Below, one piece after another: positions 4,892 through 46,038 of a DNA stretch of 64,000 nt; positions within the stretch are counted from its first letter, which is position 1; the number at the start of each line of letters is the position of its first letter. This DNA comes from Penicillus capitatus (lineage: Eukaryota; Plantae; Chlorophyta), in assembly GCA_965649825.1 (NCBI GenBank), contig OZ287701.1, positions 423,101 to 487,100 on the forward strand, given 5' to 3'. The notes under the pieces were generated by a model. The model searched no databases and was not told the origin of the DNA. It saw nothing but the letters and a program-made list of their open reading frames with translations. A program made the position numbers and the translations under genes.

Positions 4892-4963
4892 AGGTCGTAC
4901 CGAGATTCGAACTCGGGTTATTGGATTCAGAGTCCAATGTCATAACCACTAGACCATACGACC
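4892..4963 (-). tRNA. trnQ-CUG: tRNA-Gln(CTG)
   Basis: Reverse complement is GGTCGTATGGTCTAGTGGTTATGACATTGGACTCTGAATCCAATAACCCGAGTTCGAATCTCGGTACGACCT: 7-bp acceptor stem, TTGGA/TCCAA anticodon stem with CTG, GTTCGAATC T-loop, 72 nt. Confidence 0.97.
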
Positions 4964-5190: not shown

Positions 5191-7055
5191 ATGGCCGCTC
5201 CAGCTGTCGATGCTTCGCGTGTGGCTGAGGAGATAGGGGGAGCGCCGCCCGAGACGCCGCTTCTCAAGGAGTCGGCGGATTGGAAGCTCCATGCGCCGGC
5301 TTACAAGATCGACCCACGTGACGTCGATACCCCCGACAGTTGGGTGCCGCGTAACAAGAGCATGTCGCGCAACACGGGTCGCCATCCCTTTAACTCGGAG
5401 GCGCCGATTGACGAGCTCATGGATGCCGGATTTATCACACCGGTCTCGCTTCACATTGTCCGAAACCACGGCGCCGTGCCAAAACTCGACTGGAAGACGC
5501 ATCGTATAGAGATTGGTGGCATGGTGGAGAAGCCCATGTCGATCAGCATGGACGAATTGGTGAAGTTCAAGACCATCACCGTCGCAGCAACGGTGACCTG
5601 TGCGGGAAATCGCCGCAAAGAGGAGAACATGATTAAGCGCACCATCGGATTTGATTGGGGGGCATCTGCCACATCGTGCAGTTACTGGACAGGTGCGATG
5701 GATGCAGAGGAACATGTGTGCCAATGTATATACCAGGTGTGAGATTGTGTGACATTTTGAGACACGTCGGGGCAAAGGGACCGAATCAAGGCGCAAAGTA
5801 TGTCTGTTTTCGTGGGCCGCTCGGTGAGCTGCCCCAAGGAGAAGACGGCTCATACGGCACGTCCATGACATTGAGTCATGCAATGGATCCGGCAAACGAC
5901 GTCATCCTTGCTTTCAAGCAGAATGGAAGGTCACTCTTCTCACTCTTCTTGCATCAGGCGCATGAGCATTGTCTACGGTAGATGGTTGGCTCCGGATCAT
6001 GGATTTCCCGTTCGATTGTTGATTCCGGGATTCATCGGAGGCCGAATGGTTAAGTGGCTCTGCGAGATCACCGTGACAACGGCAGAGTCGAACAATCACT
6101 ATCACTTCTTCGACAATCGCGTCTTGCCTCCTCATGTCGACAAAGACATTGCCAAGGCCGAAGGTGATCCCCCTTCATAACCGTCATCCTTTGAGAGTGC
6201 CGTTTCAGGATGGTGGTTCAAACCGGACTACATTATCAATGAACTCAACATCAACTCGGCCGTGGCCAGACCGTGGCACGATGAAGTCGTTCTAATGAAT
6301 GAGAATAAACCGTACACCATCACAGGCTACGCCTACACAGGTGTGACTTGTCTGAGATATCGGGTCCTGAAGGATGTGTGTGGGTTGAAGGCGGCGGGCG
6401 TTTCGTTATTCGTTGCGAAGTGTCGCTGGACGACGGCAAGACGTGGCGTCAAGCCAACATCCGTCGTTTTGAGAAACCGAATCCCTACGGCAAGTACTGG
6501 TCCTGGGTGTTCTGGGATCTGACCGTTTCGACCTTTGAGTTTACACAATGCAAGGAACTGCTGTGCCGTTCTTGGGATTCTTCTCAGAACGGACAGCCAG
6601 AGCACATCACATGGAATGTCATGGGTATGATGAACAACTGCTATTTCCGTATCCAGATCCATCCCTACAACCATGGCAGCAGCATCGGACTGCGTTTTCA
6701 ACATCCGGCGCCGCTGTATGAAGGCAAGATCGGAACAAAAGGGTGGAGAGAGGCAACGGCACCCGTCGAGGTCGATGCGAAAGCCGAAGTAAAGGCGTCG
6801 ACGATCAAGAAAGAGACAAAGGTGGTTAAGTACACGATGGAAGAGATCGAGAAGCACGACAACGAGAAGTCCTGTTGGTTCGTGCGTGGCGGCCGCGTTT
6901 ACGATGCGACATCGTATCTGGATGATCATCCTGGCGGCGCAGAGTCCATTCTGCTAGTGGCTGGGCAAGACGCCACCGTCGAGTTTGATTCGGTGCACTC
7001 CGAAGAGGCCAAGAAGCAGTTGGAAGATTACTACATTGGAGACGTCGCTCCATAA
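5191..7055 (+). CDS. NIA: Nitrate reductase-type protein with Moco, dimerisation and cytochrome b5 domains, lacking the C-terminal FAD/NAD(P)H domain
   Basis: Motifs [18 protein letters not shown] (Moco Cys), [33 protein letters not shown] and b5 heme motifs HPGG / HSEEA. TAA at 7053-7055 follows directly after the b5 domain. About five exons. Confidence 0.92.
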
Positions 7056-7130: not shown

Positions 7131-9007
7131 TTAACACGGACGCTGTGTTCGGTAGAGAGCATCGGCAAGGGAGAGCACCCCGCAGGCCATCTCAGGGTTA
7201 TGCATACGGATGATATCCGCTCCGTTGCGCACGCAGTCCAGTGCAGCAGCACAAGAGATGACATCTCGCTCCTGTGGCGCATTCTGCCCTGAGTGAACAT
7301 CGATCGTTCGGCCAGGGGATGTGACGTGCGATGAGGTGCGTCCACCTGTGAAGGCTGTTAGGAAGCGTTTGCGTGAGAGGCCAATAAGCAACGGCATCTT
7401 GGCACAGGTGCCTCTGAAAATCTCCCGTTTCATGCGTCCCAACTCCTGTAGCACCTTGAACGACGTTTCAGTCGTTTTGGAGAAACCGATGCCTGTCCAT
7501 TCCACGCAGCGTGATTAAGGATCGAGTGCGAGCACGTGGTGGATGGACACCTGGATCTAGGATCTGTTTCCATGCAGGGATGCCGCATTCCATCGACTCC
7601 TCGGACACGATCTGCAATTCCATGCCGATGTCTCGCAACGGATCGGTAGAGTAGCTGAGATTCTCGACGTGGGTCATCGTCTGTGGTGTTCCTCTCATGT
7701 GCATCAGAAGCATGGGCACATCCAACTCTGCCACCTAAGGTCTCACGGCTCACGATCGAACGGACAGGAGGGGCTCGGAACACTGTTTGTCGCATCTGCG
7801 GATCTCTCTCCCCGGCAGAGATATCGTTCACCAGATCTGCTCCCAATTCGATGGCCTCTCGGGCGACGGAAGCATAGAAGCTGTCGATTGAGAGATAGGG
7901 ACACGTTTCGCCCAACGCCTCTTTCAGTAGCCTGAATCGCAGATGTGTTTTTAGTACATAAGAGAAAAACGCATCTTCTGCCTGATGACGGCGAAAACGC
8001 GTTCGCCTTCGATCTCTTCGGCCACGGCCGATGCGCCAGGACGCGTGGACTGACCTCCGATGTCAATAATACGTGCGCCGCACGAGACTGCCTCTACAGG
8101 ACACACACTTGAATCATATTGTGATGTGACAGCACAGTACTTTGGGCACTCTCGACCACAGCCGCTTTGTTCAGCTCCTGTCGATTTCCCATAAGAAAGC
8201 TCCCGCCATCGCTGAAGCTATCAGGGGTAATGTTCAGAATATGCATCATCCATGTTTTGGTGCCAAATGCCTCTAAGCGATCTCTGCCCAGAACGGTCAC
8301 CTGACGCACCTTCTTGTCGTCGTCTCCGATCGGCACCTTCTCTACCTCAGACAGCCGATCTCTCACCTAAGCCGCCGCCTCAGCTGAGCATATAGATATC
8401 GTAATCGAACCGGATGCGGCGAAGCTGTGTGGACGGAAAAGTAAGACTGTGCCAGATCTCGCAACGGAACCTTCACAAAGTCTCGCGCCATCCATCTATC
8501 CACACAAAAGTGTGACCTCTCTTCATTGTGTGATATCGTTACCTAGGATGTGGAATCGTGAGGTCGTCTTCGCGCATCTCTTGGTTTCCATAGAAGATAA
8601 TGTCCAGGTCAATGGATCGTGGGCCATAACGCATGGCGGTAAAATCCCTTCCCATCTCCGCTTCGATCTGTTTGAGCTTTTGCAGCAGCGTCCTCGGAGG
8701 ATCAGATGTCGTAGCCAGTACAGCAGCGTTCAGAAAATCAGGTTGATTCGTGATCTCTTCGGGGGATGTCTCGTACAGGCATGAATATCTCAAGATCTAA
8801 ATGTGATGTGACAGCTGGCCATATCGAAACGCCTCGACCCTACTCAAACCTGCACTCCGATCTGGCGCATTCCTCTCAGAGCAGCCGACAGATTTCGACA
8901 CCGATTCCCCTAGTCTCATATCCGTCCTCTTGCGCTACGTAGTGCGGAATGTTGGAGCCTACAATATTCGTGCCCAGTGCGATGACGACCTCCGCTGCAC
9001 CGGCCAT
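7131..9007 (-). CDS. folK/folP: Bifunctional HPPK-DHPS (folate synthesis)
   Basis: Spliced start MAGAAEVVIALGTNI|GNR, HPPK motif YGPRSIDLDII and IPHPR. DHPS motifs MHILNITPDSFSDGG, NDISAG, LMHMRGTP, ILDPG, IGLSRKRFL and DIIRMHN. Confidence 0.92.
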
Positions 9008-9140: not shown

Positions 9141-10477
9141 ATGGCTACCAAGGTAACGCCAAAGCCACGACGGTGCTATTCTCGAGGGGCATCCCATTCC
9201 GCAACGTCGCGTCAAAATCCCGTCCACCACTGAACGACGCTGTGTGTTCTCTAGTTCGTCACCGTTGGAGCGTCCTCGACCCATAGCCGTTCGGTACGTC
9301 GTCCTGCCCCTTGGCGCTGTCTTGACATACGCTTGCTGTGATCTTCAGTTCTATGGACCGCCGCGTGTTACCTCCAGTCCTCTCAGGCGGCCAGGCCTGT
9401 CGCGTAAAGGCTGTTCGATCTTCGCCTCGGCTGAAGTGAGCAGCGGCACGCGCAAGGACGTACCGCTCGAGCTGGAAGAAATTGGATTGCCCATGAATAC
9501 GTACTCGCCCAAGAAGCCTTTCACTGGCAAAGTCCGATCCGTCGAGCGCATCGTCGGGCCCAAGGCAACAGGAGAGACCTGTCACATCATCATTGAGACG
9601 GACGGGAAGATCCCGTTCGTCGAGGGACAGAGCTATGGTGTGATCCCACCGGGTACCAAAATCAACAGCCGTGGCAAAGAAGTCCCGCTCGGTACACGGC
9701 TCTACTCTATCGCCTCCACGCGCTATGGAGATTCTTTTGACGGCAATACGACATCCCTCTGCGTCCGACGGGCGACATACTGGGATGCGGATCTCGGCAA
9801 AGAAGATCCAGCCAAGAAAGGCATCTGCTCGAACTACCTCTGCGATGCGAAGCCAGGACAGCCCGTGACGATGACAGGGCCAACTGGGAAGATTCTGCTG
9901 ATGCCTGAAGATCAGAACACCCCCGTCATCATGGTGGCCACCGGAACGGGCATCGCACCGTACAGAGCGTTCTGGAGACGTATGTTTATGGAGAAGATCC
10001 CGAGCTATAACTTCACTGGACTGGCCTGGCTGTTCATGGGTGTGGCGAATTCGGATGCCAAACTCTACGACGATGAGATCCAGGAATTGGTCAGGTCGTT
10101 TCCCGATCAATTCCGAGTGGACTATGCCCTGTCGAGAGAGCAGAAGAACAAAGAGGGCGGCAAGATGTACATCCAGGCATGTCCTCGTAGGCTCTCACTC
10201 TTTTTCTCACTCTTCTTTAATGTTCAGGACAAGATGAAGGAGTACGCCACGGAGCTTTTTGATCTCCTGGCCAACGGAGCCCACATCTACTTCTGTGGAC
10301 TGAAAGGAATGATGCCAGGTGTGAGACGTCACGATCATCTCGCCCCAAAAGAGTGAGAACTGTTGCGAAGGTATCGACAGTATGTTGAGAGATGTGGCGA
10401 CGAATCAAGGACTGGACTACGATGAATGGCTCAAAGGACTGAAAGAGCGTGGCACGTGGCACGTCGAAGTCTACTGA
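9141..10477 (+). CDS. petH: Plastid ferredoxin-NADP+ reductase with transit peptide
   Basis: Spliced N-terminus MATK|[13 protein letters not shown]|FYGPP.., motifs [36 protein letters not shown] and C-terminal WHVEVY*. Confidence 0.96.
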
Positions 10478-12506: not shown

Positions 12507-15500
12507 TTATGGATTAAACCAGGTTGTGCTGGTACACCTGCGCAGTCCGTACTTGCAACTGTCATCCGAATTTGATTCCACAGTCAATCCTCCCAAAGAA
12601 CTCTTGCACCTGCGCAGTTCCATGGTGTGGACTTTTACTGATGAATCTAGGACAAAGATTCTTCCCGAGGCACTTTTGCATCGACGCAATCGGCAAGGTC
12701 CCTCATCCTTTAACACCTCTTTGATGACAATCTGCTCGGAAGCTTTGTCAAACACCAAACGCTTCTCCGTCTTCCTGGCTGTCGTTTTTGTTGGAGGCAG
12801 TTCTCTGGCAAGAATAGCACTCTTGCATCTGCGCATTCCAAGAGCCTTCTTCTCTCCTGCGGTGTCCTCCATGATGATCCTGTGCACAACTTCTTGACAC
12901 ACTGGGCATCTAATCGCCGTCCTTTCGCAGAGGGTTTCCTTGAGCGCACTCAAAGCGCAGTCCTTGCAGTAGCACTTGTGTCTCCTGGTTTGGCAGTCTG
13001 TAAGATTCGACAGATACCGAATGCTGATCTTACGTGTCTCCGTGGACGGCAGAGCATGTGGGATTCTTCGGTTTTGGGGGAGAGCCTGTCGCCTTCGAAG
13101 TTGAACCTTTACCCTTCTGCTTGCGTTCCACTGGCTTGCCGGCTACTTTCTTCCCGGAATCCTTGTTTTTGTTCTTCTTGTCTTCTGCCTTACGTGCTTC
13201 TTCCTTTGCATTACAGATCGCGCACTCCTTGATCTCTTTCTCCACTACTCTCGGCGGCCAAGGAGCGGCGTTCATGATCACGCGGTCGATGCGCTTTCGA
13301 CAGAATGGAAAAGGACATTCGCGTGTTTCCCTTTTCTTCAGCTTCTTGACAATCTTGTTGATGCTTTCGATGCAATAGCAGAGATGAATCCTGCAGCATT
13401 GATGGAGTGCTGTGCAAGTCGATGCAAAGAGTGTCGCACTTATTCTCCTGATTGATGGCGGATTCCGGATCGATTTTGCAAATCGGACATCGCTTGTCCC
13501 AAGAGAACGTCGCGCTCTCACATCTGCGCAGCTGCGGGACAGGCTCTCTGCTGGATGTGTCTTCGATGGAGGGCTGATTGGATGGCCCAGGTTGAACTGG
13601 GAACTTGACTAAGCTCTCATTAGGAACAGTAGCCTGCGGAAGCTTCTCCAGATCAGGCATTGCGCTGTTGACTCTGCGCAGTCTGGAAAGTGCTTCTTCG
13701 ATAACTGCATCCTTGACGATGATGCGTTCTGCGTCTTTCTGACACACTGGACACTTGATCTTGCACTTCTTTGCCAGTGCCTTGGCGGCTTCTCTGCGTG
13801 CACAGCTATGGCAGTAGCATAGATGTTCCCTGAAAAGCGGCGCATGTGACACAAATGGAGTGTCTGCGATCTTACGTAACTCCGTGCAACACCGTGCATG
13901 TGGGACTCTCGGCGCCGCACGCAAGGCACTTTGAGTTCTTCTCTTTGGCAGGTGATCTCATGTTCGTGGCAGCCTTTCTGATGACGCAATCATGAACCCA
14001 CCTTCCTCTCAGTCTCCTGGCAAGCTCTCTTCCACAATCCGTACAGTAGCAAAGATGCTTCCTGAAACAGCCATGCATGTAACTGAACTTGCGAAAGAAG
14101 CAGCGTTACGTGTTTCCGTGTCTGACGGCGCAGGTCGGATCGATGAGGCAGGTGGGGCATCGCTCGAAGTAGGGACCGTCGTTCATGATGACTCTCTCCG
14201 CCAACTGTCCGCATTTTGGGCACCTGATCTCCTGCTCGTCGAGAAGTGCCTCCTTCAGCTTCTTGGCACACTCGGTGCAGTAACACAGGTGCTTTCTAGC
14301 AGAAAGGCGTTGTTTCGTCTCCAGGGAAGATAGAGTTCTTACGTGTTGCCATGCCGAACGGAGCATGTCGGATCCTCTCTGCACTTCTCGCACTGTGGCA
14401 CATGATCAACGTCGAGGACTGTGACTCTCACAGTCAGTGTGACCCATCCTTTGTTCACGAAACCAAGAGATTCATCTGTTAACTGATCAATCGTTAAAAA
14501 CTCGCGAAAGCCCTGGCTCTTGTGTTTTCCGACAACGGATGTAAACTCTGTAGAATGTTGTCAGCAATCGAAAGCTTTGTAGAAACGAAATGCTGACTTT
14601 CGACTCTATCTCCGGAAGGCTTTGGTGACTTGTAATTCACAGCGCGAAACTCAGTTCTTGTAGAGATAGGACGATCGTGAAGATTGACAAGGTACAGGCC
14701 GACGTTGTTTGAATTCGAACTGTTTCCCTTTGGTTTAAGGAACAGCTCCCTGCAAATGAAACACAAAGAAAGTAGATCATTGGCGATTTTACTGTTGGTC
14801 GTGAAACGCACCATTTGGTTTTTTCGACTTTAAACCCCTCTGATCTCAGTATTGACGGGCACATTCCTTGCAGCCCCTTTAGTTTCCACTATGGAAATCA
14901 AATCAATGTACTTCGAAGGAGAAGTCGATCGTACAGTGCATGTGGCTGTCTTCCGGGTGACGGAGACTCTCCAGCGTTCATTGTCCTGGAGCTTGAGTCT
15001 GATCTCTGCGCGGACGAGAAGGCAGTCGTCGTGTATGAATCCCTCGTCCGAATGCATCACTCTTGCGGCAGAGATGGGATGGTATGCCAGGAAATCGTCA
15101 CATCGACCAGGAAACAATTCACGAGATCCACCTATGAACAGAGAGTTTGAGCTGGATTTCTTCATCAGACGAAACTGTAACCTTCCACGACATTCTCTCT
15201 GCTTTTCCGATTCACAAGGGTGACGGCGAAATGAGCTGTCACCCGGGTCACACCCTCATTGTACAAAATAGCACCTAACTGTCCATTGAACAGGTGCTGC
15301 ACTTCGATACGCCTGAAAACACCGAATATCGTCAAGAGCAACGTCAGTTTGCTGTCTGACCAAATTCTCCTGTCTAGCTCAAACGGCTTATTGGACACCC
15401 TTCTGTTTCTCACACTGAGAAGACGTTCAGACACCCAATACTACAAAGAACGGATCATGTCGTCACAAAAGCGATGGCTTTGTGTAGCTGACCTCATAGG

Positions 15501-18500
15501 TCGCGTAGTATTTGTACTTGTTGAGAATGAAACTATTGGGAATACCATTGTCTTCGCCATATCCACCTGCACACATTCACATCAAAAGGAAAAGGCATCA
15601 GTCAGCATTCTATATACTTTCGCGGATCCTTTTGTCACCATCGGGCTCCCCCCATGTCGAAGGAACTTGATTCAGAGGTTTTGGAACGTATGCGATCTTC
15701 TTGTCGAACTCTCGCTCTTCGAATAGCGTAATTTTGATCTCGATCGTTGCCCAGCCTTCTTTGACAAATCCCAATGCAATGTTATCCAGCTCAGCTCGAG
15801 AAAACTTAACTGCTACCCATCTTCTGTCATATCCTCGGATCACTCGATAGCAGCCTGTTCTGTACATTTCGATGCCAGGGAGGAAAGTGATCGATTTACT
15901 TTTTGTTCTGTCTCTTGCAGAGTCATTGCAATGTTCAGCGCGAATAGTAAAGAGTCCTCGTATGAGCTCCTTTTTCGTGTTTTTTATTAAAATAACAGAA
16001 GAACTTGAACCTGTTAAGCCATTGGGATAACAGAACGCCTGCCTGTTCCCAAACAAAACCTTGCATTGAGAAATTAGTATACAGAAGACACTCACAGCTC
16101 AGAGTCTTCAATTCTGATGATTCCAGTGGCAACACACCATGGGCTCATATTTGTCACAAACCTCAGCTTCCACTGGGCACCACTCGACGATGGGCCAATA
16201 CAATGAGAACAGGTGATCACCTTGCAAGTCGCTGTCTTTCTGTCCACTGAGATCTGGCAGGATTCGCTGTCATCCCGTTTCAGTCTCATATCCAGACGAA
16301 CGAGGAAGCAACCCTCTCTTACGAATCCGGAATCCTGTGTTGTTATCTGGCTGCGCGAAAGGAGTTCATGTTCGCAGCAATCGTTCATGAACGAGAACTG
16401 GCACAGGTCTCCTGGCGAACATCTGTTTTAGCATTCGGTTTATTGCGAGTCTTGATTCGCCGCTACCTGTACGATAGCTGTTCTCATCATTGTCATGATT
16501 CATCAGAGTGAATCCAAACTGAACATCCACTCGGCTCTCGTTCTTCGACTTAAGGCAAGCCAAAAGGGATCCACGTTCATTGCATCTGAGTCCGATGCAC
16601 CTTAGACACAACAAGCACGGTCGACAGAGTGAAACGATCTCTTTTAACAACCATAGTCGGCCTTCCACTGCGAATGTGTTTGTGAAAATCTGTTGCGTCA
16701 ATCCTAGAAATGATATGATCACGCACCACTGTCCAAATGTAAACAAACATCATTACAGCCAATAAGATCTGGAATGGCTCACCTCATAGGAAACAAACCA
16801 ACTGTTCAGCGTGATCCTGTTACTGTGGGAAATGTAATCAAGTCCAAAAAATGGAAGAGTTTGTGCACGGCCACCTAAATGGGCAAATAGTGTGCAAATC
16901 TTAGAAGCATCTGAGTACCCTCATTGTGCACGGCAATATGACTTTCGATCTGGGGTAGACGTCGCGGTGGAATCTGGCTAAAAATCGGACCCAGTGAGAG
17001 TTGAAAATCCCAGTCTCTGACCGGCTTGATCTCGATACGCATGTTCAACCAGCCGTTTTCCACGAATGGAGAATATCTGTCCAACAGATCCGCCGTGCTT
17101 TTGAGCAGTTGAACCCATCCTTTAGAAGAGCCACCGTCGATGCGCTCCTCGAACTCTGGAACAGAAATGTCTGATAAAAAACAACAGCAGAGCAGGAGAA
17201 CCTGCAACTGGATCAGTATTCACGTCTTCCTTAAATACTGGAACACACAGGTATGGTGAGGATATCAACGGTAAGGGAAGACATGTAAGTTGGCATTTGT
17301 CGCATGCTTGATTAAGTTTGTCGATTTTCGCTAAAATCCCAATAGGACTGTTGCTCATGTTGATGAGAAGAACACTCATACAATCTCCACCAGAATCCCC
17401 TTTTTCCTTGCAAAGTTTTAACTTCCTATACGGACAGGAAACGTTCTGTAGCAAGAATGGAATATTCTATTGTGCACAGCTGACATCTCGCAGTCTCCAA
17501 TTTTGAAAACGTCACTGCTGACGATTGATGGACTCAGTTTCCAAGGAGAATAGACTCTCCACTGTTACAATCCAATCTTGGACTTTAAGAAAACGCTCAC
17601 TCTGCGCTTACTTCACACACCGTCTTTTCTCTCCAGACTCTGTGAGCGAAGGACTCGTTTTTTCGATGTTTTATCCTCAACTCCAGCCGCAGAGTGAAGA
17701 GATCGTTTTTTAAATATCCGGATGACGGATCCTTAATTTCTGACGCATCGATGAATGGACCCACCTTCACCCTTGCTCGAAACAACCCAAAATGACCAAG
17801 AGCATCTGTAACCATACGTGCCACTCGCCAAACCGTCCACCTTGTAAACGCAGAGGAGGTAGGTACCTCTTGTTAGGCTTTTCCTTTTATCTTCATAGTT
17901 AACAAGAGTGATAGTGAAGTGCGCATGCACTGGTCGGTTATGCGTCTCCAGTCCAGCCACAAGCTTCCCGTCTTCTCGATATTCCGCAAAGATGCGCCTG
18001 GAGAAACGGATATCCCGTTTTGTGTGTGACAGCCTTCGACGTCCTTTACCATTTCCTGCCACCGGCTTTGAAGTCTAACGATTTCATCCTCCCCTCTCGT
18101 TGAAAAACGGAGTGGCGTCCGCGCCACTGTCACAGACGTTGTTGCACAAGCCAAACGACACGTTTAGTTTTCGTTACCTTGTTGTTCGCATACACTGGTT
18201 CATGAGACGAGTCGTCTTCTTCCGCACTGCCGTCATGACAAACCAAACTTAAAGACGGCCAAACTCCAATTTGCATGAATGGCGTTCCAAATCGTTAAAA
18301 CGTTTTCGAATTCTCGGTGCGCCAACTGTCAGAGACCAAAAAGGACACACTTTGGCAGGCAAGCCAAAAGAGTTTCCGTATTTCCAATTATAAATAACGG
18401 CGCCGTGATAGATGTACGATTGTGCCATCGCGACCTGATGACAGCGCGGACAGGAAGGAATCTGCGAAGAAAGTGCTGACACAGCACAAATGGAGCAAAC

Positions 18501-18554
18501 GAAAGAACCGTCTGTGCGCCTAATCGGCTTCTCATGAGAAGGCTCGCCAGACAT
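12507..18554 (-). CDS. Multi-MATH (about 6) plus five MDM2-type C2H2C4 RING protein, putative E3 ligase; 5' end uncertain
   Basis: Six MATH-like blocks (e.g. SLDFKAGGRKWRIF..HFTITLVN..GYLKNDLFTLRLE; WKLKG..FKVEKTKW|ELFLKPKG..VGLYL..GFREFL..GFVNKGWVTLTV). The last runs in frame into CEKC-x9-H-x4-H-x3-C-x2-C..CPKC RING repeats. Continuity of every MATH exon was not fully verified. Confidence 0.72.
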
Positions 18555-19635: not shown

Positions 19636-21564
19636 TCATGAGTATTGGCGACAGCGACTATTTTTAAAGTGTTTCTCGGGATTCTTCTTTGGCAAGACAG
19701 CCAGACAGAGAAAACAGAATCGATAGGGACAGACAGAGCAGTGAATGATATTGTCCCGACTTGTCTTTGGCTGATACGTGCTGCAAACTGGGCATCTCTT
19801 GTACTCCCAAAATCGTTCATCTAGGTCATATGGATTAGGATTCCTACACACACCATCAGGAACAACATTTTCAATTCAGAATAACGTACGCTTTGAGTCG
19901 TCTTTTATCCTCTGCCTGCATTCACGCACATCGTCAAACACCAAGGCACCAATGTTTAGTAGCACCTCTCGTTTTTGTTGATCCTTTTGAAGCCATTCCC
20001 ATTCGGAAATGTCACTTTTGTTGAAAAACCGGCTTCCTTTTGCGTTGAAGTGATCGTAAGTGATATCCATGCTTCTGTCGACAACGTAGTTGTAATGTGT
20101 GTTGCAAGAGGTACAGAACATGTGATCGCATCCTCCATCTTTTTCGACTCCCATGCCACAGTTGGGGCATTCATGGGCGTTCGTCTTCACATACTGCATG
20201 GAAAGAACCTGATTCCTGAGATCTTGCAGATAACGTTGGCGCTTCTGTCCAGCTCTCTCTACTGCACCCAACAGCTTCTTTCCCCATCGAACGCATTTCC
20301 TATACCACAGAACTTGCGATTGGAGTTTATTGAGTAGTGGAGCGCACCTGCCGGGGTGCCACGCACCCAGACATTCCGCGCAGAAGGCGTAGTAACACTT
20401 AGGACACTGAGCAAACTGATCGCTCTCCACGATACATGCCGTGCTGCAACGGGGACAGTACTTAATGTCGGACATCGCTTCGAGCGTTCTCTGAAACAAC
20501 AGCTGCTCCCAACGATCGAAGTCCTCCTGATGCCACTCATCGTCATTCTGACTGCCTCGCCTTGCGTCTGTGTGGGAGCGTACCTTCTCTAAGTGCTCCT
20601 TCAGAACCTCCGGAGGCACAGGCGTGGTGCATTTGACCTCTGGGCAGTGCAGTTCGACATGTCCTTGCTCGATGTTGACGGAGCAATACTTCCGGAAGCA
20701 TTCGACGCAGCAGAAATGCTGGCACTTGTTGAAACGGACAAAGTTCTTTCCGGGCTGCTCTTCCATGCAGACGGGACAGGACCACGCACTCTTCTGGAAT
20801 TCCTCGTTCGATCGGATCGTGTCGTGTTGGAGCATGTCTTGCATGATCTCCAGCGGAGAGATCTCATCCGAACACACTGCTATCCGGGGATCGTCGTTTT
20901 CTTGCCACGAACGTGGTGGCACGTCGATGGGAAGATGCGTGTCGATCTGCAGCGCCGACAGCAGAGATCGCTGCAGCCAGTCGATCCACGTAAAGCAAAC
21001 AGGAAAACCGGACGCCTCCTGCCACATCCGATCCAACTGTGCGGCCAACTGCGTGAGCTGTTGCCGGGAAAGCCAAAATGCAGAGAGACGGAATCCGGGA
21101 GGTGCATCCGACGGATAACCAGGAACAAGATCCAGCATCAGACACAGAGGCGGCACGTGGAGGACCTAAGCTCTATCCGTCTTTGTACAGAGGAGGTGTC
21201 GCGTGCAGACATCGGACCTTAGAGCTCCGCTCTTCTGTTTCTGCGGTACTGGATTGACTGCCGTTGGTCGAGGCGAGGGAAAGCGTCACGCCGTCTGAGG
21301 GCACTTCAATTCGCACCGTGACTCGACAATGCAAGTCGACGGGTTTCTCGGGGACACTGCTTTCGAGGAGTTCTGTGAAATCGCTGTCTTCCTGCAGTTT
21401 TGGCCCTCCTTCCCATTCCGACAATCTGGTATCTAATGTCACTCACGCGAAAAAGCGAGACGTTACCTGAAATCTGATCCAAGGATCGAACGCAGGGCGA
21501 TGACCTCGTCCATCTGTTCCTGCCAGTTTCCAGCATAGGAGGCAGCGTCGACCATGGTGTTCAT
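19636..21564 (-). CDS. RNF14-like: RWD-RING1-IBR-RING2 (RBR) E3 ubiquitin ligase, RNF14-like
   Basis: RWD start EQMDEVIALRSI and YPSDAPP; RING1 CPVC..CQHFCCVEC..CPEVKC; IBR CPRC..CPKCYYAFCAEC..WHPG; RING2 CPNC..KDGGCDHMFC; extra C-terminal Cys-rich module. Confidence 0.93.
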
Positions 21565-22750: not shown

Positions 22751-24414
22751 TCACATGTCGAGCAACGCGTGCAGCTCGTCTTCAGAAAAATCGCTGAAAA
22801 GCAGCTTCATTCCTGGGGCGCATTCACGCACGACGCTCGAGGTCTTGATTCTGCGTCGCTGTTTCTCGGTTACTTGCAGATGAAGCATGATCCCTTCGCC
22901 TTTACCCGGTCCAGGTGCTGCTGTACCAAGCCCACCAAGAAAGGGAGCGGGTCCGACAATATATGCCATCTTCGACGACCCGCCGCCGAAGTCGATTTCT
23001 GTCGTAGGCATCTTCACCATGCTCGTTATGCCTCCTCTAAATACGGTAATATCCATTGGAAGCTGACCAGTCGAGGTAATTATGTAATAAGCCAAAGCTG
23101 TCTGCACCGGAAGCTGCGGCTGCGTTCTGAAATCTGTCACACTTTTGCGGATGATCAGAGACAGTTCCGCAAAAGTCTCTCGGAGAGACTTTCCTTCGAG
23201 ATCACGGCCTTCCAAAGACGGTATTTGATACCCGTAACCATTTCCGCAGTAGTTCTCCGGAAGAAATTCGGCACCGTTCTGCAGATACTCAATTGCTATG
23301 GGCGTCGTGGTATTCGAGATTTCGAGATCCGAGGCGCTGACAACAGGCTGAGTTCGCTCTTTGAGAATTTCGATCGAAAGCATCCAATTGAAGGCGACGA
23401 GGATATCGTTGGTCGAGACGAACTGGCCTTCCTCCAAGAACGGCTTCACCATTGCTTTCATATCTGCCAACGTTTCCTGCAAGACACTCTTCGAATGATA
23501 TGATGTGACAGATGATAGAAAACCTTGGAGAAGTACAGAGGTTCTAGGGAAAACGAGTCGTCCGGAAACTGAACGAGGGTTGGAAATACCGCATCTGGCT
23601 TCACTTTACGTGGAAGCTGCGCGATGTCTTCGCCCAAAAAAGTGAAACGCTTGGCCAACTGATCTGGCCACATGTAGGAACGGTCGTGGCATCTGTCGGG
23701 AATCTCCACTCCACGGTATGCCCTTCCGAGGTCACGGTAGAGCTCGATGAGTCGCTGCCCGTCCATTAGTATGTGAGAAATGAAGAGGGTCACCGCACAG
23801 CCGTCTTTGAAATGCGTCAATCGTGCTGCGGCCAGAGCCTTTTCTCCGCTAGAGCACAAATACAGCTAAGCTTCTAATCATGGGTGACAGAATATAGTGG
23901 ACCTAAGCATGGCTTTGCTGTCTACAGCTTCCATGAAGAAAGGCATCTCCGGGCACACAGGGAAATTGGCATGAGGGGCTGTTATCTTGCCATAGGTCAG
24001 AATGGCGGATGCGATGGTCATGTCCGCTTGCATCTCGAAGAAAGGGAAGCCGAAGGCCTGAGCGTTCTCGGGATTGACCTATTTGGAATATCACTGTTAC
24101 TGGATGTCTTCAAAAGGGAGTCACTGTTACTGGATGTCTTCAAAAGGGAGATATTGTTTTCGCACTTCAATGCGGTAACGCGTATCGACGTCTGGCGCTA
24201 CTCTGCCGCAGAGGATTGGATACTTGACGGACAGCTTTTCTAGAGCCTCCTTTAAGTGTTCAGCGTCCACATCGTAGTCGAAGAAAAAGGGCCACGAAAT
24301 GAAGACGAAACTGTTGAGAGAGTAAACGTCGATTGGCGCCAGAAGAAACGTTCCGTCTTGGACGCCTTGCGGATGAATCCATTCTTCTTTCAAAAGCTTG
24401 AAAGGCTCCGGCAT
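22751..24414 (-). CDS. BAHD-family acyltransferase, copy A
   Basis: HXXXD motif (SHILMDG), DFGGG variant of DFGWG, N-terminal LKEALEKLSVKYPILCGR; four exons. Confidence 0.88.
24091..24150. repeat. 30-bp perfect tandem duplication in BAHD-A intron 1
   Basis: tcactgttactggatgtcttcaaaagggag occurs twice; single in copies B and C. Confidence 0.95.
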
Positions 24415-24519
24415 TACGAAAGACACGAAAACGGAACGGTTCAGTGGTTTTTTAGACGCGGAATTTCCTGAGCGTACCTCTAAAAAGCCAGTACGTAAAT
24501 GTGTGCCATTTGTTGTCAT

Positions 24520-27500
24520 CTTGATGGAGCATTCATTGCGCAGCTGTCACGTCGTTCGTGGCACTTCGAGAACTTCATTCTGTCTGCATTTCTGGAAGTC
24601 TGCGCGTCAATGATCTCATGTGCTGTCTGTTACTGCACAGTTTCTGATGTAGGCGTTGACAGACGAATGGCGTTGCAGTTTCGTCGACGCGCTGAACTGG
24701 ATGAAACGGCGCTGGGATAACGCAATAAAACCTCCGGTACCTCAACAAACCTTTTGATACCATAACAACAACCGTTTCTTTTGTTGCCTGAGATAGAAAC
24801 TCGGCAGAAGATCAGAGCACCACTGAACATGAATACGAAGATTCTTGTTGAATTTGAAAAACAAGGAGCAACATGCAAACACAACCATAAACAGCAACAC
24901 ACTGGATGCGCATACACTGCGCATGATGAAGAAAGAAAAAAACCCGTTAAGTAGACTCTTCCAGGTCCCTGACATTAAGTTCAAGACTTTGGCGCAACTG
25001 TTAAAAAACGTACAAGAGACGACCAGAATTCCTCTGTTGTTGTTGCTGATGGAAAGCAGGAATCTTAAGAAGACTTATGCGTTTGACGCGTCATTGAGGG
25101 AAACGAGTTCAGAACGCAGCTTCCAGAATCCACTGGTGTCCCTATCCGCCCGGCCCGATTGCCAGATGACCCAGAGCTTGTGAACCAGCCAGGTGTCTTC
25201 ATTTTCCTCCAGATCGTGGATTCCCTGAAACCGTATCTTCAAGACTTTTGCATACACGTCCAGTATTCTGTGGACGCCTAACCACAGGCGACAAAACAAG
25301 AATCCCATGAAAACAAAGTTCAGGATGGCACAGATGATGGAGAGCATGGATGCTTCTTCGTCGGTGATGAATGTCGCAATGGCATAGACGAAGAGAGCCA
25401 TCAGCAGCGATGTTGCCTCCATCGAGTTGTAACCGATCTTCTTGTTGAGCCATATCCATATCGGAGCCAGTTGTCCAGCGCCAAGCCATCTGAGAGTACT
25501 GCCCATGCAGGAAGGTAGTGTCTTGTGTATGTCTTCGGCGTCAAATGGTTTGATGAAGACATGAATTAAGCAAGACACAAAAATCACAATAAACACCAAA
25601 CCCAGTCTTATGTTCGTCGTCACATTGATCGGCGAGAAAACAATGATGACGAACGACAGAGTTATCGTTCTCATGGCTACGAAAATGTTCCAGTACAGAG
25701 CCAGTCCTGTGGAACGGAGTCCGGAGCACAGGAATCCGTACTTGTGCACAAAATCGACATCCTCCAACAGCTCTTGCTGTTTACCACGGTATATGATGGA
25801 TGCCGAGTAGGCGAGAACGATGAGACAGCATAACAGCAAAGCCAGAGAAAGAATGGACACCCACAAATGAGGCCCCTCCATGTATTTGATGGATGAGTCT
25901 TCCGACCAGATGAAACTGTCGTTCAGGAGATCGTACTGATTGAACTCGTGATCGGTAAGCTTCTCTGGCAGCTTGGCAAAACTGACAACGCGTAACAGTT
26001 CACCAGCGATGTCGATAACGTAAGTGAAAAATCCGAAGAAGAAAATGAACTGGACATGCGGAATCACACCGTCTTCAGTTGATCGATCTCCTCGTCGTTT
26101 GAGTCCGAGCCTCCACAATGCAAACATGAGGACATAGAAAAGAAGTATAAGCACAGGGAAGAGAGTTCGAATCAACAGAATCATCAGTGTCAAGCCTCTC
26201 TCGTGTTCGTGACGGTGTTCATTTGAGAAATTGCATTCGAATGGGTGCAAGCGGATGATGTTGGTCATCCTTCCCACTGCGCCTACGTTCATCGTCGAAG
26301 TGATGAGACTTGGTTAGAAAGGAATAATTTCAGTACTTTGAATACCGAGCATCGCTTTCATGCCTGTTTTCCACCTGAGGCCAAAAGAAAGGGCCAAGCT
26401 GCACAGTTGCATGTAGTTGAACATTATCTAGGAGAACAAAATGACATCAGCAATGCCCCTTTGACGGTAGATTTTCTTACTCCGTAGATCGTCGAGACGG
26501 AGCCCACTGCACTGCTGAAGTCAGGACAATTAGAACCATCCGAGCACTCGCGACATCCGTGCTGATCTGTCTCTGGGTTGGAGCGCGACAACAGTCTGAG
26601 ATCTTGAGCTCTCTGTTCAGAGGTGGAAGGCCCGGCCGCCTTCTCGTCAATCGATTGGATGTCACCGACAAGTTCTGGATGGTCTGCAGGATATTGGGCG
26701 AGTCCCTCGGGTAAAGCGTCTTCAGCTTCCGATGAGCTCATCGAAGACAAGGATGACTTATCCAATCCGAGCGCAATCCTCAGCCTCTGCGAAGCTTGGA
26801 TGGCAAGATCTGTGTGCATGCTTCTCCAGGCCAACCATAACTTGAAAGAAAAAGCAAAAAAGAACACAACTGCAGAAGCTAGGGTCATAAGAACAGATAC
26901 CAAACGGCTGCCGCGGCAGGGCTCGCAATGGCCGCTTACTGATCGTCCGTGTTCTTCGGCGCACGAGGAGCACAGTGTCCCGTTGTATGCATCTGAACAC
27001 TGGGGATAATCTTCTGTAAAGTCTTCCGGCTTTCTGTGGCTTTGGTTCCACGTTCTCAGTTCTTCTGAGACGCGCGTCGTATCTTCATAGTAATCGACCA
27101 GATCCCTTGTTCTGTTCTCTCTTTTGCATGCTTCATCGATGGGACACTTGATCATTCGAGGCGAAAAGGGCGTCGAGTGCCAGTACTCTTCCTCTGGCAC
27201 CAATGCCATGGTTCCAACGCATATTCCATGCTCCTCACACTCTCGGCAGTCGTCTATCGTCGAGAAACTGTAGTACGAGTAGTCGCATCGCGAACAGGTG
27301 GCTTTGTCTTCATCCATGAGCTCTCCGTGTCGACAGGGTTTCGTTTTGAAGACCACAGTCGTCGACAGATTCCTCCCGTCCTTCGAACGAATCCATACCG
27401 AATCATTAATGTTTGCTCCGACCACGTTTGTGTTGCTGATACACACAATCCCGTTCTTAGCAGTGTATTCAGTTGTTCCACTAATGTGTTGAGATTCAAG

Positions 27501-30500
27501 CAATACAGCAAGATCTACGGGTCACGCATGAACCTCGAAGAAGCTGCAGCATGATCTCACCGCTATCTTTGTTTGGCCATTCGATGGTTTCGCCAAAGAT
27601 GTCCCTCACGGAGACACTGATCTCTTTGGCTGAACATTCTGCGTTCTCGTTAACCTTGGAAGAGATGCCCAGAAGATCTCCAGGAGATAATGACAAAGGT
27701 CCATCGACGTTCTCTATCTTCAAAGACGCAGCATCTGTCCCGATGTCATCCTGTCTGCTATTGTTGTTAGTCTAAATGACAATAGAAAAAGTGTGGTCAT
27801 CGAGGTAGGAAATAAACTCACGAGCATGCGATTGTCTGTCACAGTAAGGCATGTTTGATTTCCGAAAACACGTCCTTGGATGACGTCGTCAGCCCGTACA
27901 TCATCATGACAAACATATGCGAAGTTCGATATTGAACCCACATACAAGCCTCCTCCACTGTTTTCGGCGGTGTTTTGGGTCACATTCACCTTAGTGAACA
28001 TCACATGGCGGCAGCGATCATTCGGGGGCACGGCAGGAGGACAAGGAAAATCGCTGAAGTGTGACGGGTCTCCGTGGCTGCCTTCGAGATACATGCCACC
28101 TAGTGCACTTTCTAAGTATGCCCTTCGCGCACGGAGAAAGTACCTCCAGTAATGGCTTTGTTCTTTGACATCGTGATCTCTTCCAGTACCACATTCACAC
28201 GCGATCCACCTCTGGTATTATTAAGTGCAAGGTAGATGCCACCTCCTTTGCCTTGACGACGATCCTCAATATGTAGAAGGTACTGGCCACTCTGTTTCCT
28301 CATGTCGAGCCATGTTTGAACGAGGGAATCGCCATCATCTTCCAGCCATTTCAGTCCGAGTGCTCGGTTGCCTGTCAAATCCCATTCTCGGATCTGAAGG
28401 CAAGAAGAAGTCAGGAGGGACACGGCTGAGTGCTATTTACCTTAATGGATTGAGTCAGTTCGTGTTCGGAACTGATGTAGACGGCTCCGCCGAGCAGAGC
28501 TGCGTTGTTCTCATAGGTAAAACAACTTTGCGTTAGACATTCGTTCTTGATTCCTCCGGCGTTTCTGAGGCATATCGCTCCTCCAATCGAAGCGATGTTT
28601 CGCGTGAAGAGGACATGCGACTGCTGGTTCGAGAACAGACTCCCTCCCTCGAAAGATATGGCACCACCAGCGTTTGTTGCTATGTTCTCGGTGAAGGTAG
28701 TATCACAGAACTCTTGGATTTCGATGCTGCCTGTCATGCAACAGACACACGTTGCACGATGCAAACGTAAAGATGCAACGCACCGCATTGGAGGCAAGCA
28801 ATTGCACCGCCGGTCATGAGAGCGGCGTTAGATATGAAATGCACAGCGTTGGGATTAACCTCGGACACCCCTGGCGGAATCTGAAAGAAGCTTCCTTCTT
28901 GCAGTCCCAGTGCACCCCCCGAAAGAGCATGATTTGATTTGAAAGTGGTCAACTTGACCGTCATACTCGTTCGTCGAAATGCTCCTGCGCCACCGATACT
29001 GCCCGCTCTGTTCTCTTCAAACCAGCAGTGTGCGAACTCGGCAACGCCGCCAATCTTTAAAACGGCGCCGCCTTCTTCCGCTCTGTTGTGGCGCAAGACG
29101 GTCTCACTGCACGTCAAAATGTCGGCAGTCGACATAATGGCTCCTCCTCTGACAGTAGCTGTGTTGTTTGTAAACGTACAGTTATTCACTGTCATCCGAA
29201 CCTCGGCATCGACAGCCCCTCCCTGCTGTCCAGCGCTGTTGTTTTCGAAGGTGCACTTTTCAAACGAGACTCTGTTTACCCAGACGGCGCCCGCTCTCTC
29301 CTCGGCTCTGTTGTTTACCATACTGCAATTGACAAATAACGCGTCGTAGAGACTGAGTGCACCTCCGCGCCTTCCAGCGCTGTTACTCTCCAGATGACAA
29401 TCCACAAAGCTTGCGTTTTTCTTCACATAAACTGCCCCTACATCACGATCGGCCGAATTCCCAAAGAAACGGCAGGCTTTAAAGATCGCGTCGCCACGCA
29501 CTTCCACGGGTTTGTCATTTCCAGCCTTGTTCTTCGTGAACTTGCAATCTTCGAATGTCGCATCTCCCATTACAACAACAGCTGGAGAGTTTCGCCCGGC
29601 AGTGTTGCCATCGAAATCGCAGCCATGGAATGTCGCGTCTTCTTCGACGGTGACGCCAGCACGGTCCGTTTCGGCGCTGTTGTTTGCAATATGGCAATCT
29701 CGCAGTTCTGCATTCCCTGTGATGTAAACGGCACCGAACATTTGTCCAGCTCTATTGTTCTTCATTCTGCAGTTCCGAAAAGTGGCGTTTCGCGCCACGA
29801 GAACTGCGCCTACGTTGATGGCGGTGTTATTCACAATGTCGCAGTCAAAGAAGCTAGCATTGCCCGCGGCAAAGACGCTTCCTACACTTCCGCTGGCGCT
29901 GTTACTTGCAATGCTGCAATGACTGAAAGTCACGGTTCCTTCATCCACAACAACTGCCCCTCCTTCAGCGCCACTGTTTCCCTCAAACTGGCAGTATTGA
30001 AAACTGGCATCGATGTTCGAAGTGTAAACGGCCCCTCCTCTCACAATCGCATTGTTGTTGTGAAATTCGCATCGCTCGGCCTTCACAGGAGCGTTCCGCA
30101 CATCCACAGCACCGCCAGTATCGGCACTGTTGTTTGTGAACTGCGTCTCGCTCAAGATCAACGCGCAGCCCATCCCTGATAGCGCACTCCCTCCTAGTTC
30201 TGGTGGAAGTTGGTTCTCGGCTGGAAGGATTGCAGACGGGACAGTCAATCCCTTCTTGGAGTTGTCTCTGAAAACGCAGCGCTCCATGGCTATCGAGCAC
30301 CCTAGTCAAAATCGCCATAAGGACTGATGATGCATTCAGTCGCTATTCGTACCTGCCGATTGCCAGCCCTCGTCGAAATCGTTCGAAAACGCTGTCCTAT
30401 ATCTGCGTTCGCGTGGTCCGACGGCGAAAGGCCATCGGGATCCCAAGACTTCGATGGCGGTAGCATTCTTGCACCCTCTGAATACCAGAGATTCGATCCG

Positions 30501-44405: not shown

Positions 44406-46038
44406 TCACATGTCGAGCAACGCGTGAAACTCGTCTTCGGAAAAATCGCTGAAAAGCAGCTTCATTCCTGGGGCGCATTCGCGCACGACGCTCGAGGTCT
44501 TGATCCTGCGTCGCTGTTTTTTGGTTATTTGCATAAGAAACACGATCCCATCTCCTTTACCAGGCCCAAGTGCTGCTGCACCATACCCACATCCAAGAAA
44601 GGGCGCGGGTCCAACAATGTACACCATCTTTGGCGAGCCGCCGCCGAAGTCAACTTCTGCTGTGGGCATCTTCACCATGTTCGTCACGCCTCCTCTCAAC
44701 GCGGTAAAGTCCATCACAGACTCTCCAGTCGAAGCAATTAGATAATGAGCCAAAGCTGACTTTGCCTGAATTTGTGGTTGCGTCCTGAAATCTGTCACAC
44801 CTTTGCGGATTATTAGAGACAGTTCCGCAAGGGTCTCTCCGATAGATTTTCCTTCGAGATCGCGGCCTTCCAAAGACGGTATTTGATACCCGTAGCCATT
44901 TCCGCAGTAGTTTTCCGGAAAGAACTCAGCGCCGTTCTTCAGATACTCAACCATCGTGAACGTCACGGTGCTCGAGATTCCGAGATCTGAGCCTTCGACA
45001 ACAGACTGAGTCCGCTCTTTGTAGATTTCGGTTGAAAGCATCCAATTGAAGGCGACGAGGACATCGTTGGATGAGACGAACTGGCCTTCCTCCAAGAACG
45101 GCCTCACCATTGCTTTCATGTCTGCCAACGTTTCCTGCAAGACATGCACTTATTAGACGATATGATGCTACAGACGATAGACAACCTTAGTGAAGTACAG
45201 AGCTTCTAGAAAAAACGAATCATCCGGAAACTGAACGAAGGATGGAAGTACCGCTTCTGGCAGCACCTTTTGTGGAAGTTGTGCGATGTCATCTCCTAAG
45301 AAGGTGAAGTGCTTGGCCAACTGATCTGGCCACATGTAAGAACGGTCATGGCATCTGTCAGTAATCTCCTCGCCGCGGTACGCCCTTCCAAGGTCACGGT
45401 ACAATTCAATGAGTCGTCGGCCGTCCATCAGCATATGAGAAACGAAGAGGGTCACCGCACAGCCGTCTTTGAAATGCGTCAATCGTGCTGTGGCCGGAGC
45501 CTTTTCTCCACTAGAGGACACAGTTAGCTTTTCATCAACGTGGCAGAAGACAATGTACCTCAGTATGGCGCTGCTGTCTACAGCTTCCATGAAGAAAGGC
45601 ATCTCTGGGCACACAGGGAAATTGGCATGAGGGGCTGTTATCTTGCCATAGGTCAGAATGGCGGATGCGATGGTCATGTCCGCTTGCATCTCGAAGAAAG
45701 GGAAGCCGAACGCCTGAGCGTTTTCGGAATTGACCTGCATGGAATATCACTGTTATTGGGTGTCTTCGAAAGGCGACCGCGTTTCCGCACTTCAATGCGG
45801 TAACGTGTATTGGCGTCTGGCACCACTCTGCCACAGAGGATTGGATATTTGACGGACAGCTTTTCTAGAGCCTCCTTTAAGTGTTCAGATCCACATCGTA
45901 ATCGAAGAAAAATGGCCACGAAATAAAGACGAAACTGTTGAGAGAGTAGACGTCAATTGGCGCCAGACGAAACGTTCCGTCTTGGACGCCTTGCGGATGA
46001 ATCCATTCTTCTTTTAAAAGTTCGAAAGGCTCCGGCAT
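44406..46038 (-). pseudogene. BAHD acyltransferase copy B, frameshifted in exon 1
   Basis: gtg gac gct gaa (copy A) is gtg gat ctg aac act taa here: 1-nt loss near 45889 and early stop. Downstream HMLMDG and DFGGG still readable. An assembly error cannot be excluded. Confidence 0.8.

Follow-up and report, generated by a model that had tools for sequence, protein, structure and literature searches.

What is encoded on the minus strand between 12.3 and 18.7 kb of a 64,000-nucleotide stretch of Penicillus capitatus DNA (contig OZ287701.1, positions 423,101 to 487,100; hereafter the window)? Viewed unspliced, the open reading frames (ORFs) of this interval are all short and separated by stop codons, and they carry recurring motifs. 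The locus therefore raises the question of whether these pieces belong to one gene and, if so, what its product might do. Here, we describe a spliced model whose predicted protein places six MATH units ahead of five RING units. On balance, we favor the reading that this is a single gene encoding a lineage-specific, single-chain RING-type E3 ubiquitin ligase with a predicted multivalent MATH receptor array. Its product would represent a new arrangement of known parts, in which an N-terminal array of six MATH units is joined to a C-terminal array of five MDM-type RINGs that includes conserved pseudo-RINGs. Ligases uniting RING and MATH domains are already known, in the form of TRAF proteins and TRIM37; the order and composition found here differ from theirs.

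A spliced gene model joining MATH and RING units

The model runs along the minus strand (18276..12507) and comprises 25 exons with a coding sequence (CDS) of 4461 nt, specifying 1486 aa and closed by a single terminal stop codon (12509-12507). All 24 introns are of the GT..AG type, with lengths of 44-112 nt, 21 of them lying within 44-62 nt. Two automatic splice-graph models, one scored by exon length and the other by codon usage, were rejected; because both broke the homology between the internal repeats, we adopted a manual model, drawn up with the three-fold internal repeat as a guide and then checked by script. Exons 1-5 occupy 18276-18178, 18126-18050, 17997-17867, 17805-17612 and 17561-17485; exons 6-10 occupy 17425-17283, 17170-16919, 16874-16783, 16728-16652 and 16600-16467; exons 11-15 occupy 16411-16221, 16172-16096, 16042-15639, 15566-15493 and 15440-15361; exons 16-20 occupy 15312-15182, 15131-14935, 14888-14812, 14749-14598 and 14547-14343; and exons 21-25 occupy 14295-14110, 14061-13876, 13829-13440, 13390-13034 and 12984-12507. 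The least certain parts of the model are exon 1 and the junction between exons 6 and 7 (17283/17170).

An earlier, sequence-only reading of this DNA had treated the MATH and RING parts as one gene, and had named fixed stop codons within the exons as a sign to the contrary. No such stops were seen: the 25-exon frame is stop-free and the gene is under purifying selection. Furthermore, the junction between the two parts falls inside exon 20 (14547-14343): the C-terminal half of MATH 6 is followed there by eight linker residues and then by the first half of RING A, with no intron in between. Hence, the MATH and RING parts are not separate genes, a conclusion also supported by an orthologue and a further paralogue lineage, both of which show the same colinear layout.

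Relatives and coding constraint

Whole-protein searches of a 5.8-billion-protein collection returned no match even at E<=10, and a scan of JGI metagenome contigs with the MATH 6-RING region found no relative. A search with a RING profile brought up two fragments of ORFs, and exon 21, used in an exhaustive search, added a few more; all are unannotated ORFs, and the four relatives that were looked up all lie on ENA metagenome contigs. One lineage consists of the window gene, part of the window being matched in ERZ25074695, and its orthologue on a 599-kb contig of ERZ26696514 (L005; 77.6% nucleotide identity over the whole gene). A second lineage is formed by L004, on a 1.23-Mb contig of ERZ26696514, and by L006 from ERZ25074695, which is 76% identical to L004; both share the colinear six-MATH, five-RING layout of the window gene. 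Since the window gene and L005 represent lineage 1, and L004 and L006 lineage 2, these sequences indicate two related organisms, each with both paralogue lineages. The same MATH-RING layout is thus seen on four independent contigs from two samples. Two more divergent fragments, P0003 and P0006, contain the same kind of RINGs. That no described protein has this layout, as had been suggested, agrees with our results: no counterpart to a MATH-then-RING arrangement turned up among annotated proteins in the protein and metagenome-contig searches that were run, or in the literature searched.

Comparison of the window gene with L005 reveals the pattern expected of a coding sequence. The donors of 22 of the 24 introns are conserved, as are all acceptors of exons 2-25. 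Exon indels (42, 6, 18, 3, 3, 3, 3+3 and 66 nt) come in multiples of 3, apart from one additional nucleotide in exon 13, a 2-nt difference at the 3' end of the final exon and exon 1, which aligns poorly. Intron length differences, on the other hand, are mostly not multiples of 3. Mismatches amount to 0.187, 0.176 and 0.288 at the first, second and third codon positions, respectively. By the Nei-Gojobori method, dN/dS between the two genes is 0.32 for the whole gene, 0.39 for the MATH array and 0.17 for the RING array. The bias toward third-position substitution and the whole-gene ratio together indicate coding constraint.

The orthologue also bears on where the gene begins. Nucleotide similarity between the window and L005 ends at 18129. 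L005 possesses a short ATG exon (METSKDEPSSFALTKQQWYAVCE), closed in phase 0 by a GTAAC donor that lies ~50 nt upstream of exon 2, and this ATG exon is homologous to the window exon ending in ...PVYANNK followed by GTAACG. Because of this homology with exon 18276-18178, we place the start of the MATH-RING gene, probably and with moderate confidence, at ATG 18276. The start had previously been set at ATG 18554. We rejected that codon as unsupported: the ORF that it opens (18554-18252) is not conserved in the orthologue, which has its own ATG exon as described. This upstream ORF (18252-18554, minus strand) encodes 101 aa beginning MSGEPSH, and includes a zinc-ribbon-like CSIC...CPRC motif; nothing corresponding to this ORF is seen near L004, L005 or L006. 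Possible explanations are a 5' untranslated region (5'UTR) ORF, a lineage-specific first exon or noise.

Six MATH units in three pairs

The N-terminal two thirds of the predicted protein contain six successive MATH units of ~125-165 aa each, which fall into an a-type (MATH 1, 3 and 5) and a b-type (MATH 2, 4 and 6). We scored them against Pfam MATH_2 (PF22486), for which the curated cut-off is 32 bits, and against leave-one-out profiles. MATH 1 (17612..18276, minus strand, as are all units below; exons 1-4) reaches 35.3 bits with Pfam and 54 bits with the leave-one-out profile; MATH 2 (16919..17561; exons 5-7) 18.3 bits (E=0.003) and 26.6 bits; MATH 3 (16221..16874; exons 8-11) 26.7 bits (E=7e-6) and 67.9 bits; and MATH 5 (14935..15566; exons 14-17) 13.7 bits and 49.3 bits. 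MATH 4 (15639..16172; exons 12-13) has no Pfam match and a leave-one-out score of 16 bits (E=4.5e-7, one sequence), and MATH 6 (14393..14888; exons 18-19 and the first part of exon 20) scores 36.8 bits with Pfam. The curated cut-off is thus passed by MATH 1 and MATH 6. MATH 2-5 are named as MATH units because of internal homology rather than Pfam score: each of the six units matches the profile of the other five, the weakest being MATH 4, and in BLAST comparisons MATH 4 matches MATH 2 (E=2.7e-4) and MATH 6 (E=8e-5), and MATH 5 matches MATH 3 (E=2.5e-13). Domains of the MATH/TRAF superfamily fold as eight-stranded antiparallel beta-sandwiches; a single-sequence AlphaFold prediction for exon 13 alone, which covers part of MATH 4, gave a pLDDT of 35, too low to carry meaning.

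The end motifs reported earlier, GYLKND/GFVREG/GFIHDD in MATH 1/3/5 and FVENGW/FVKEGW/FVNKGW in MATH 2/4/6, are all found in the model. MATH 1, 3 and 5 share 23-29% identity with one another and MATH 2, 4 and 6 share 21-23%, against 10-19% across the two types. The intron phase pattern 0,2,1,0,2,1,1 recurs in each MATH pair, and every unit opens with a 77-80-nt exon beginning at, or one codon ahead of, a conserved Trp codon. The third intron of MATH 2 and MATH 6 is missing from MATH 4, where one intron has been lost. The proposal that a tandem a/b pair was copied three times is borne out by the identity matrix and the recurring intron phases; taken with the motifs, these indicate that the array arose by triplication of the pair and that the triplication is old.

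Searched against the PDB, a profile of the six units finds the MATH domains of SPOP (E=3e-8) and USP7 (E=1e-4), with TRAF5 and TRAF6 marginal (E 0.07-0.9). MATH 6 retains a GF..F motif that, on our reading, aligns with what we take to be G132/F133/F136 of SPOP. The b-type units retain a G-(F/W) motif aligned with SPOP G132-F133 at the peptide groove, which the a-type units lack. The fastest-evolving unit is MATH 2, for which dN/dS between the window gene and L005 is 0.73.

Intact and degenerate RING units

Five RING units, A to E, occupy the C-terminal third of the protein, again on the minus strand. A phase-2 intron of 46-49 nt interrupts every unit after 'HG.T', or after a degenerate equivalent in RING D. 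RING A (14160..14392) retains all eight ligands in C2H2C4 order, with a spacing of exactly C-x2-C-x9-H-x4-H-x3-C-x2-C-x16-CPxC, and its intron (14342-14296) follows HGNT. RING B (13929..14159; intron 14109-14062) is degenerate, having the first six ligands but not the final CPxC pair. Neither a 24-nt intron nor a switch of frame, either of which would bring this CPxC back, was accepted, since L005 and L004 retain the CPxC-less sequence in frame. RING C (13709..13928; intron 13875-13830) has all eight ligands and is followed by a C-D linker of ~73 aa (13490..13708). RING D (13258..13489; intron 13439-13391) is again degenerate: its first His is replaced by Gln, its sixth ligand changes from Cys to Ser, and its last pair reads CPFPFC (C-x4-C). 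RING E (12864..13224; intron 13033-12985) possesses all eight ligands, including a CAIC pair, and is followed by a C-terminal tail of ~117 aa that ends at the stop codon (12507..12863). Behind its first C-x2-C, RING E carries a 55-aa Lys-rich insert (window 13034-13224), which is 22 aa longer in L005 and longer still in the L006 protein P0005, always in frame. Because its length varies between homologues yet the frame is always kept, this low-complexity insert probably represents a loop that the protein tolerates rather than an overlooked intron.

The segment containing RINGs A-C scores 35.1 bits, in three matched stretches, against Pfam zf-C3HC4_3 (PF13920; cut-off 27 bits), and the segment containing RINGs D and E scores 18.8 bits, under the cut-off. 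When RING A alone or a five-RING profile was compared with the PDB, the significant matches were exclusively MDM2 and MDM4 (E 3e-6 to 3e-4); RINGs of the same Pfam family from MEX3C, MIB1 (RING3) and MUL1 gave E>0.1. The C2H2C4 motif is an inclusion criterion for the MDM family, which is described as metazoan, and is held to be unique to that family (PMC5543598). Since the PDB matches are to MDM2 and MDM4 only and the motif is reported as unique to MDM proteins, the label 'MDM2-type' is well founded, and the MDM2/MDM4-type ligand order proposed earlier, with its H-x4-H element, is present. The count of five such RINGs needs qualification: a full set of eight ligands is found in A, C and E, and degenerate motifs in B and D.

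RINGs B and D are nonetheless maintained and not decaying, being as strongly constrained as the intact RINGs. The three homologues examined, namely the window gene, L005 and L004, share exactly the same degenerate features in both units, whose dN/dS values of 0.12 and 0.14 compare with 0.04 for RING A, 0.16 for RING C and 0.23 for RING E.

Two further features of the array deserve mention. An extra Cys two residues ahead of ligand 5 (HLCYC; e.g., window 14291-14277) is invariant in all five RINGs and in the three homologues; it could serve as an alternative zinc ligand, for instance in RING D where ligand 6 is Ser. In addition, six [LM]RR[VC]xS motifs are found on the minus strand at 12510-12870 and 13530-13700 (LRRVNS, LRRCES, MRRCKS, two copies of LRRCKS, and LRRCTS). 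Two of these, of the form LRR[VC]xS, lie in the C-D linker and four, of the form [LM]RRC[KT]S, in the tail. They are retained in the orthologue and in the P0005 paralogue and resemble basophilic-kinase (RRxS) sites, which makes them candidate phosphorylation sites. In P0005 (L006 10001-12694), the C-D linker is greatly expanded by approximately seven near-identical ~30-aa repeats (...SLSQTSAGGSR.R.IDLATRTSNERRPARRNRE...).

Relationship to known ubiquitin-system proteins

The resemblance to MDM2 and MDM4 resides in the RINGs. Besides the C2H2C4 order, it extends to the H-x4-H-x3-C-x2-C spacing, to the motif C..C...P..C.V.HG.T.HL..C..CAKKLK....CP.C and to a hydrophobic beta-strand after the RING motif (RVIM here, QMIV in MDM2). 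The mixture of intact and impaired RINGs, moreover, echoes the active/inactive heterodimer of MDM2 and MDMX. The differences are equally clear: five tandem RINGs instead of one, a non-animal source, no Arg after CPxC, and an additional Cys in HLCYC where MDM2 has HLMAC. Because Pfam searches of the whole protein did not detect the SWIB p53-binding domain, the acidic domain or the RanBP2-type zinc finger, the window protein is MDM-like in its RINGs only and is not a member of the MDM family.

For the MATH array, the closest sequences are those of SPOP, akin to the plant BPM proteins (MATH-BTB adaptors for CUL3), and of USP7. The role that we propose would be shared with these proteins, namely recognition of short linear motifs that directs enzymes of the ubiquitin system. 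Neither the BTB/POZ domain that in such adaptors lies C-terminal to MATH and binds CUL3 (no Pfam match at E<=1) nor a USP domain is present in the window protein, and no cullin would be needed because the ligase module is fused directly to the MATH array. SPOP gains multivalency through oligomerization, whereas here six MATH units are predicted within one chain.

TRAF proteins and TRIM37 also combine a RING, as ligase, with a MATH domain, as receptor or module for partner binding, in one polypeptide. Their RING is N-terminal and their MATH domain C-terminal, the reverse of the order seen here; the RING subtype differs as well, and TRAF-type zinc fingers (no zf-TRAF match), B-box and coiled coil are lacking. 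The description of the protein as a TRAF in reverse can therefore stand as an analogy only, its MATH domains being nearer to those of SPOP and USP7 than to the marginal TRAF5 and TRAF6 matches.

Mind bomb proteins (MIB1 and MIB2) offer a parallel of a different kind, with an N-terminal substrate-binding region followed by several C-terminal zf-C3HC4_3 RINGs. The tandem RINGs of Mind bomb are not all catalytic. In place of MATH units, these proteins have MZM/REP and ankyrin regions, for which the window protein has no Pfam matches, and their RINGs are of the C3HC4 type, MIB1 RING3 being a weak match (E=0.13). Taken together, these comparisons indicate that the window protein, as predicted, fails the defining features of the TRAF/TRIM37, SPOP, MDM and Mind bomb families with respect to domain order, BTB, TRAF zinc fingers, SWIB and MZM/ankyrin.

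Proposed function and alternative readings

How might such a protein work? In the reading that we favor, the MATH array would act as a multivalent substrate receptor. Its units would bind short peptide motifs, as MATH domains do in SPOP, USP7 and TRAF proteins, on a single substrate or on several, and six in tandem could confer avidity or combinatorial recognition. One or more of the intact RINGs would recruit a ubiquitin-charged E2. RINGs A, C and E keep the Pro of CPxC and the conserved helix Leu/Ala. The best candidate for E2 recruitment is RING E: where MDM2 contacts its E2, this unit has Ile (CAIC) and Pro (CPVC), and no other RING of the protein shows both together with a complete set of ligands. 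The degenerate RINGs may each lend structural support to an intact neighbor in the same chain, B pairing with A and D with E, and the six LRR[VC]xS motifs of linker and tail would be candidate sites through which basophilic kinases regulate the ligase.

Several observations weigh against a multivalent, active ligase. Four of the six MATH units do not reach the Pfam cut-off, MATH 2, 3 and 5 being under the MATH_2 cut-off and MATH 4 having no match. RINGs A-C do not have a hydrophobic E2-contact residue after the first Cys (CEKC, CPTC and CLAC); in RINGs A and C, this first contact position is polar or small despite full ligand sets. Many active RINGs, including that of MDM2 (CPVCR), carry a 'linchpin' Arg after the last CPxC. 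In the window protein, this residue is Gly in RING A and Gln in RINGs C and E, leaving the window RINGs with no linchpin Arg; among the relatives, CPVCR occurs in RING E of the L004 paralogue only. At the nucleotide level, one extra nucleotide in a T run shifts the frame within the L005 equivalent of exon 13 (~7450-7560, MATH 4). The original frame is still conserved throughout the sequence downstream, and we read the insertion as either an error of assembly or a frameshift acquired by this copy very recently. Finally, the splicing, start codon and expression of the gene are themselves deduced from genomic sequence.

It is tempting to speculate further on the arrangement of the RINGs. MDM2-type RINGs work as dimers. 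The linkers between RINGs A and B (9 aa) and between D and E (14 aa) are short and each joins one intact to one degenerate RING; together with the strong constraint on B and D, these linkers suggest, by analogy, built-in RING/pseudo-RING pairs. Heterodimerization between the RINGs of MDM2 and MDMX is established, and MDM4 has no ligase activity of its own (PMC5543598). The RING array might then consist of fused MDM2/MDMX-style heterodimers, with pseudo-RINGs B and D packed on A and E so that an obligatory inactive partner is built in, coupled to a six-fold MATH receptor. We put this forward tentatively, as a possibility that is rather doubtful in its full form.

The linchpin and E2-contact residues are also the main strength of the foremost competing explanation, in which the protein is a pseudo-E3, serving as scaffold or adaptor without catalytic activity. 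Here, the MATH array would bind partners and the RINGs would be zinc-stabilized interaction or oligomerization modules, the protein maybe docking onto another ligase instead of recruiting an E2 of its own. The degeneracy of two of the five RINGs fits such a role, and MDM4 provides a precedent as a conserved MDM-type RING that lacks its own ligase activity (PMC5543598). Set against this are the three RINGs with complete ligand sets, CPxC Pro and helix Leu/Ala, the Ile at the E2-contact position of RING E, the CPVCR of RING E in L004, and the constraint on the RINGs, which is stronger than elsewhere in the protein (dN/dS 0.04-0.23). We consider a pseudo-E3 unlikely on these grounds.

Another possibility is that RINGs A, C and E are independently active in parallel, with B and D persisting as tolerated relic spacers that do not pair. 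The tandem RINGs of the same Pfam family in Mind bomb, with MIB1 RING3 as a weak match, show that such arrays exist. Relic spacers, however, should drift, yet B and D have dN/dS values as low as those of intact RINGs and keep their exact degenerate motifs between paralogues; the true linkers, by contrast, vary by tens to hundreds of residues. Parallel action with idle spacers is accordingly improbable. Lastly, a non-functional locus, be it a decaying tandem-repeat pseudogene, two neighboring genes misread as one or an assembly chimera, could draw on the uncertainty of the first exon and the exon 6/7 junction and on the +1 indel of the orthologue, but is largely refuted, and highly improbable, given a 4.46-kb frame open over 25 exons, third-position bias and dN/dS in keeping with coding constraint, an exon that spans the MATH/RING junction, and the same layout on four independent contigs from two samples.

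The noteworthy features are the conserved pseudo-RINGs and the occurrence of an MDM-type RING outside animals. Lineage-specific E3 architectures are common in protists. The C2H2C4 motif, held to be diagnostic of the MDM family (PMC5543598), is present here outside animal MDM proteins. Were the pairing of RINGs with pseudo-RINGs to be true, the protein would embody the MDM2-MDMX principle in a natural single chain and offer a compact system in which to study how an inactive RING sustains an active one. Should the fused-heterodimer reading as a whole be true, the supposedly MDM-unique C2H2C4 RING subtype would exist, or have arisen independently, outside animals.

Genomic neighborhood

Immediately upstream of the MATH-RING gene and on the same strand lies a second ubiquitin-ligase gene (19876-21156, minus), of the RBR type and RNF14-like, with Pfam matches to RWD (3.8e-14) and IBR (1.7e-12). 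L005 has no such gene at the equivalent position, being ~2.5 kb shorter there than the window.

On the plus strand, a single-exon ORF of 1361 aa (38109-42194) encodes an NB-ARC domain followed by ~17 nearly identical 42-aa TPR repeats, an NLR-like organization. It sits in a local GC peak (58-63%), its repeat array is highly homogenized, and the exact protein also occurs on ENA contig ERZ25074695:ctg332023.

Inspection of the ORF list by eye further revealed a gene cassette in two to three diverged versions (22751-30287, 44406-53740 and 57504-58238). Its members are an acyltransferase-like ORF (22751-23482, 44406-45149 and 57504-58238), a multi-pass membrane protein (25075-26292 and 48434-49642), a Cys-rich protein (26424-27503 and 49823-50878) and a beta-helix protein like the chlamydial polymorphic membrane proteins (PMP; 28734-30287 and 52115-53740). 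Similar beta-helix/PMP-like genes flank L004.

At the other end of the window are a tRNA gene (4892-4963; 70.8 bits, the sole Rfam match), a nitrate-reductase-like ORF recognized by eye only (6348-7055) and a plant-type ferredoxin-NADP reductase (FNR; 9244-10356), whose closest solved relative is the root-type FNR of maize (323 bits over 222 aa). Together, these three point to a plastid-bearing eukaryote.

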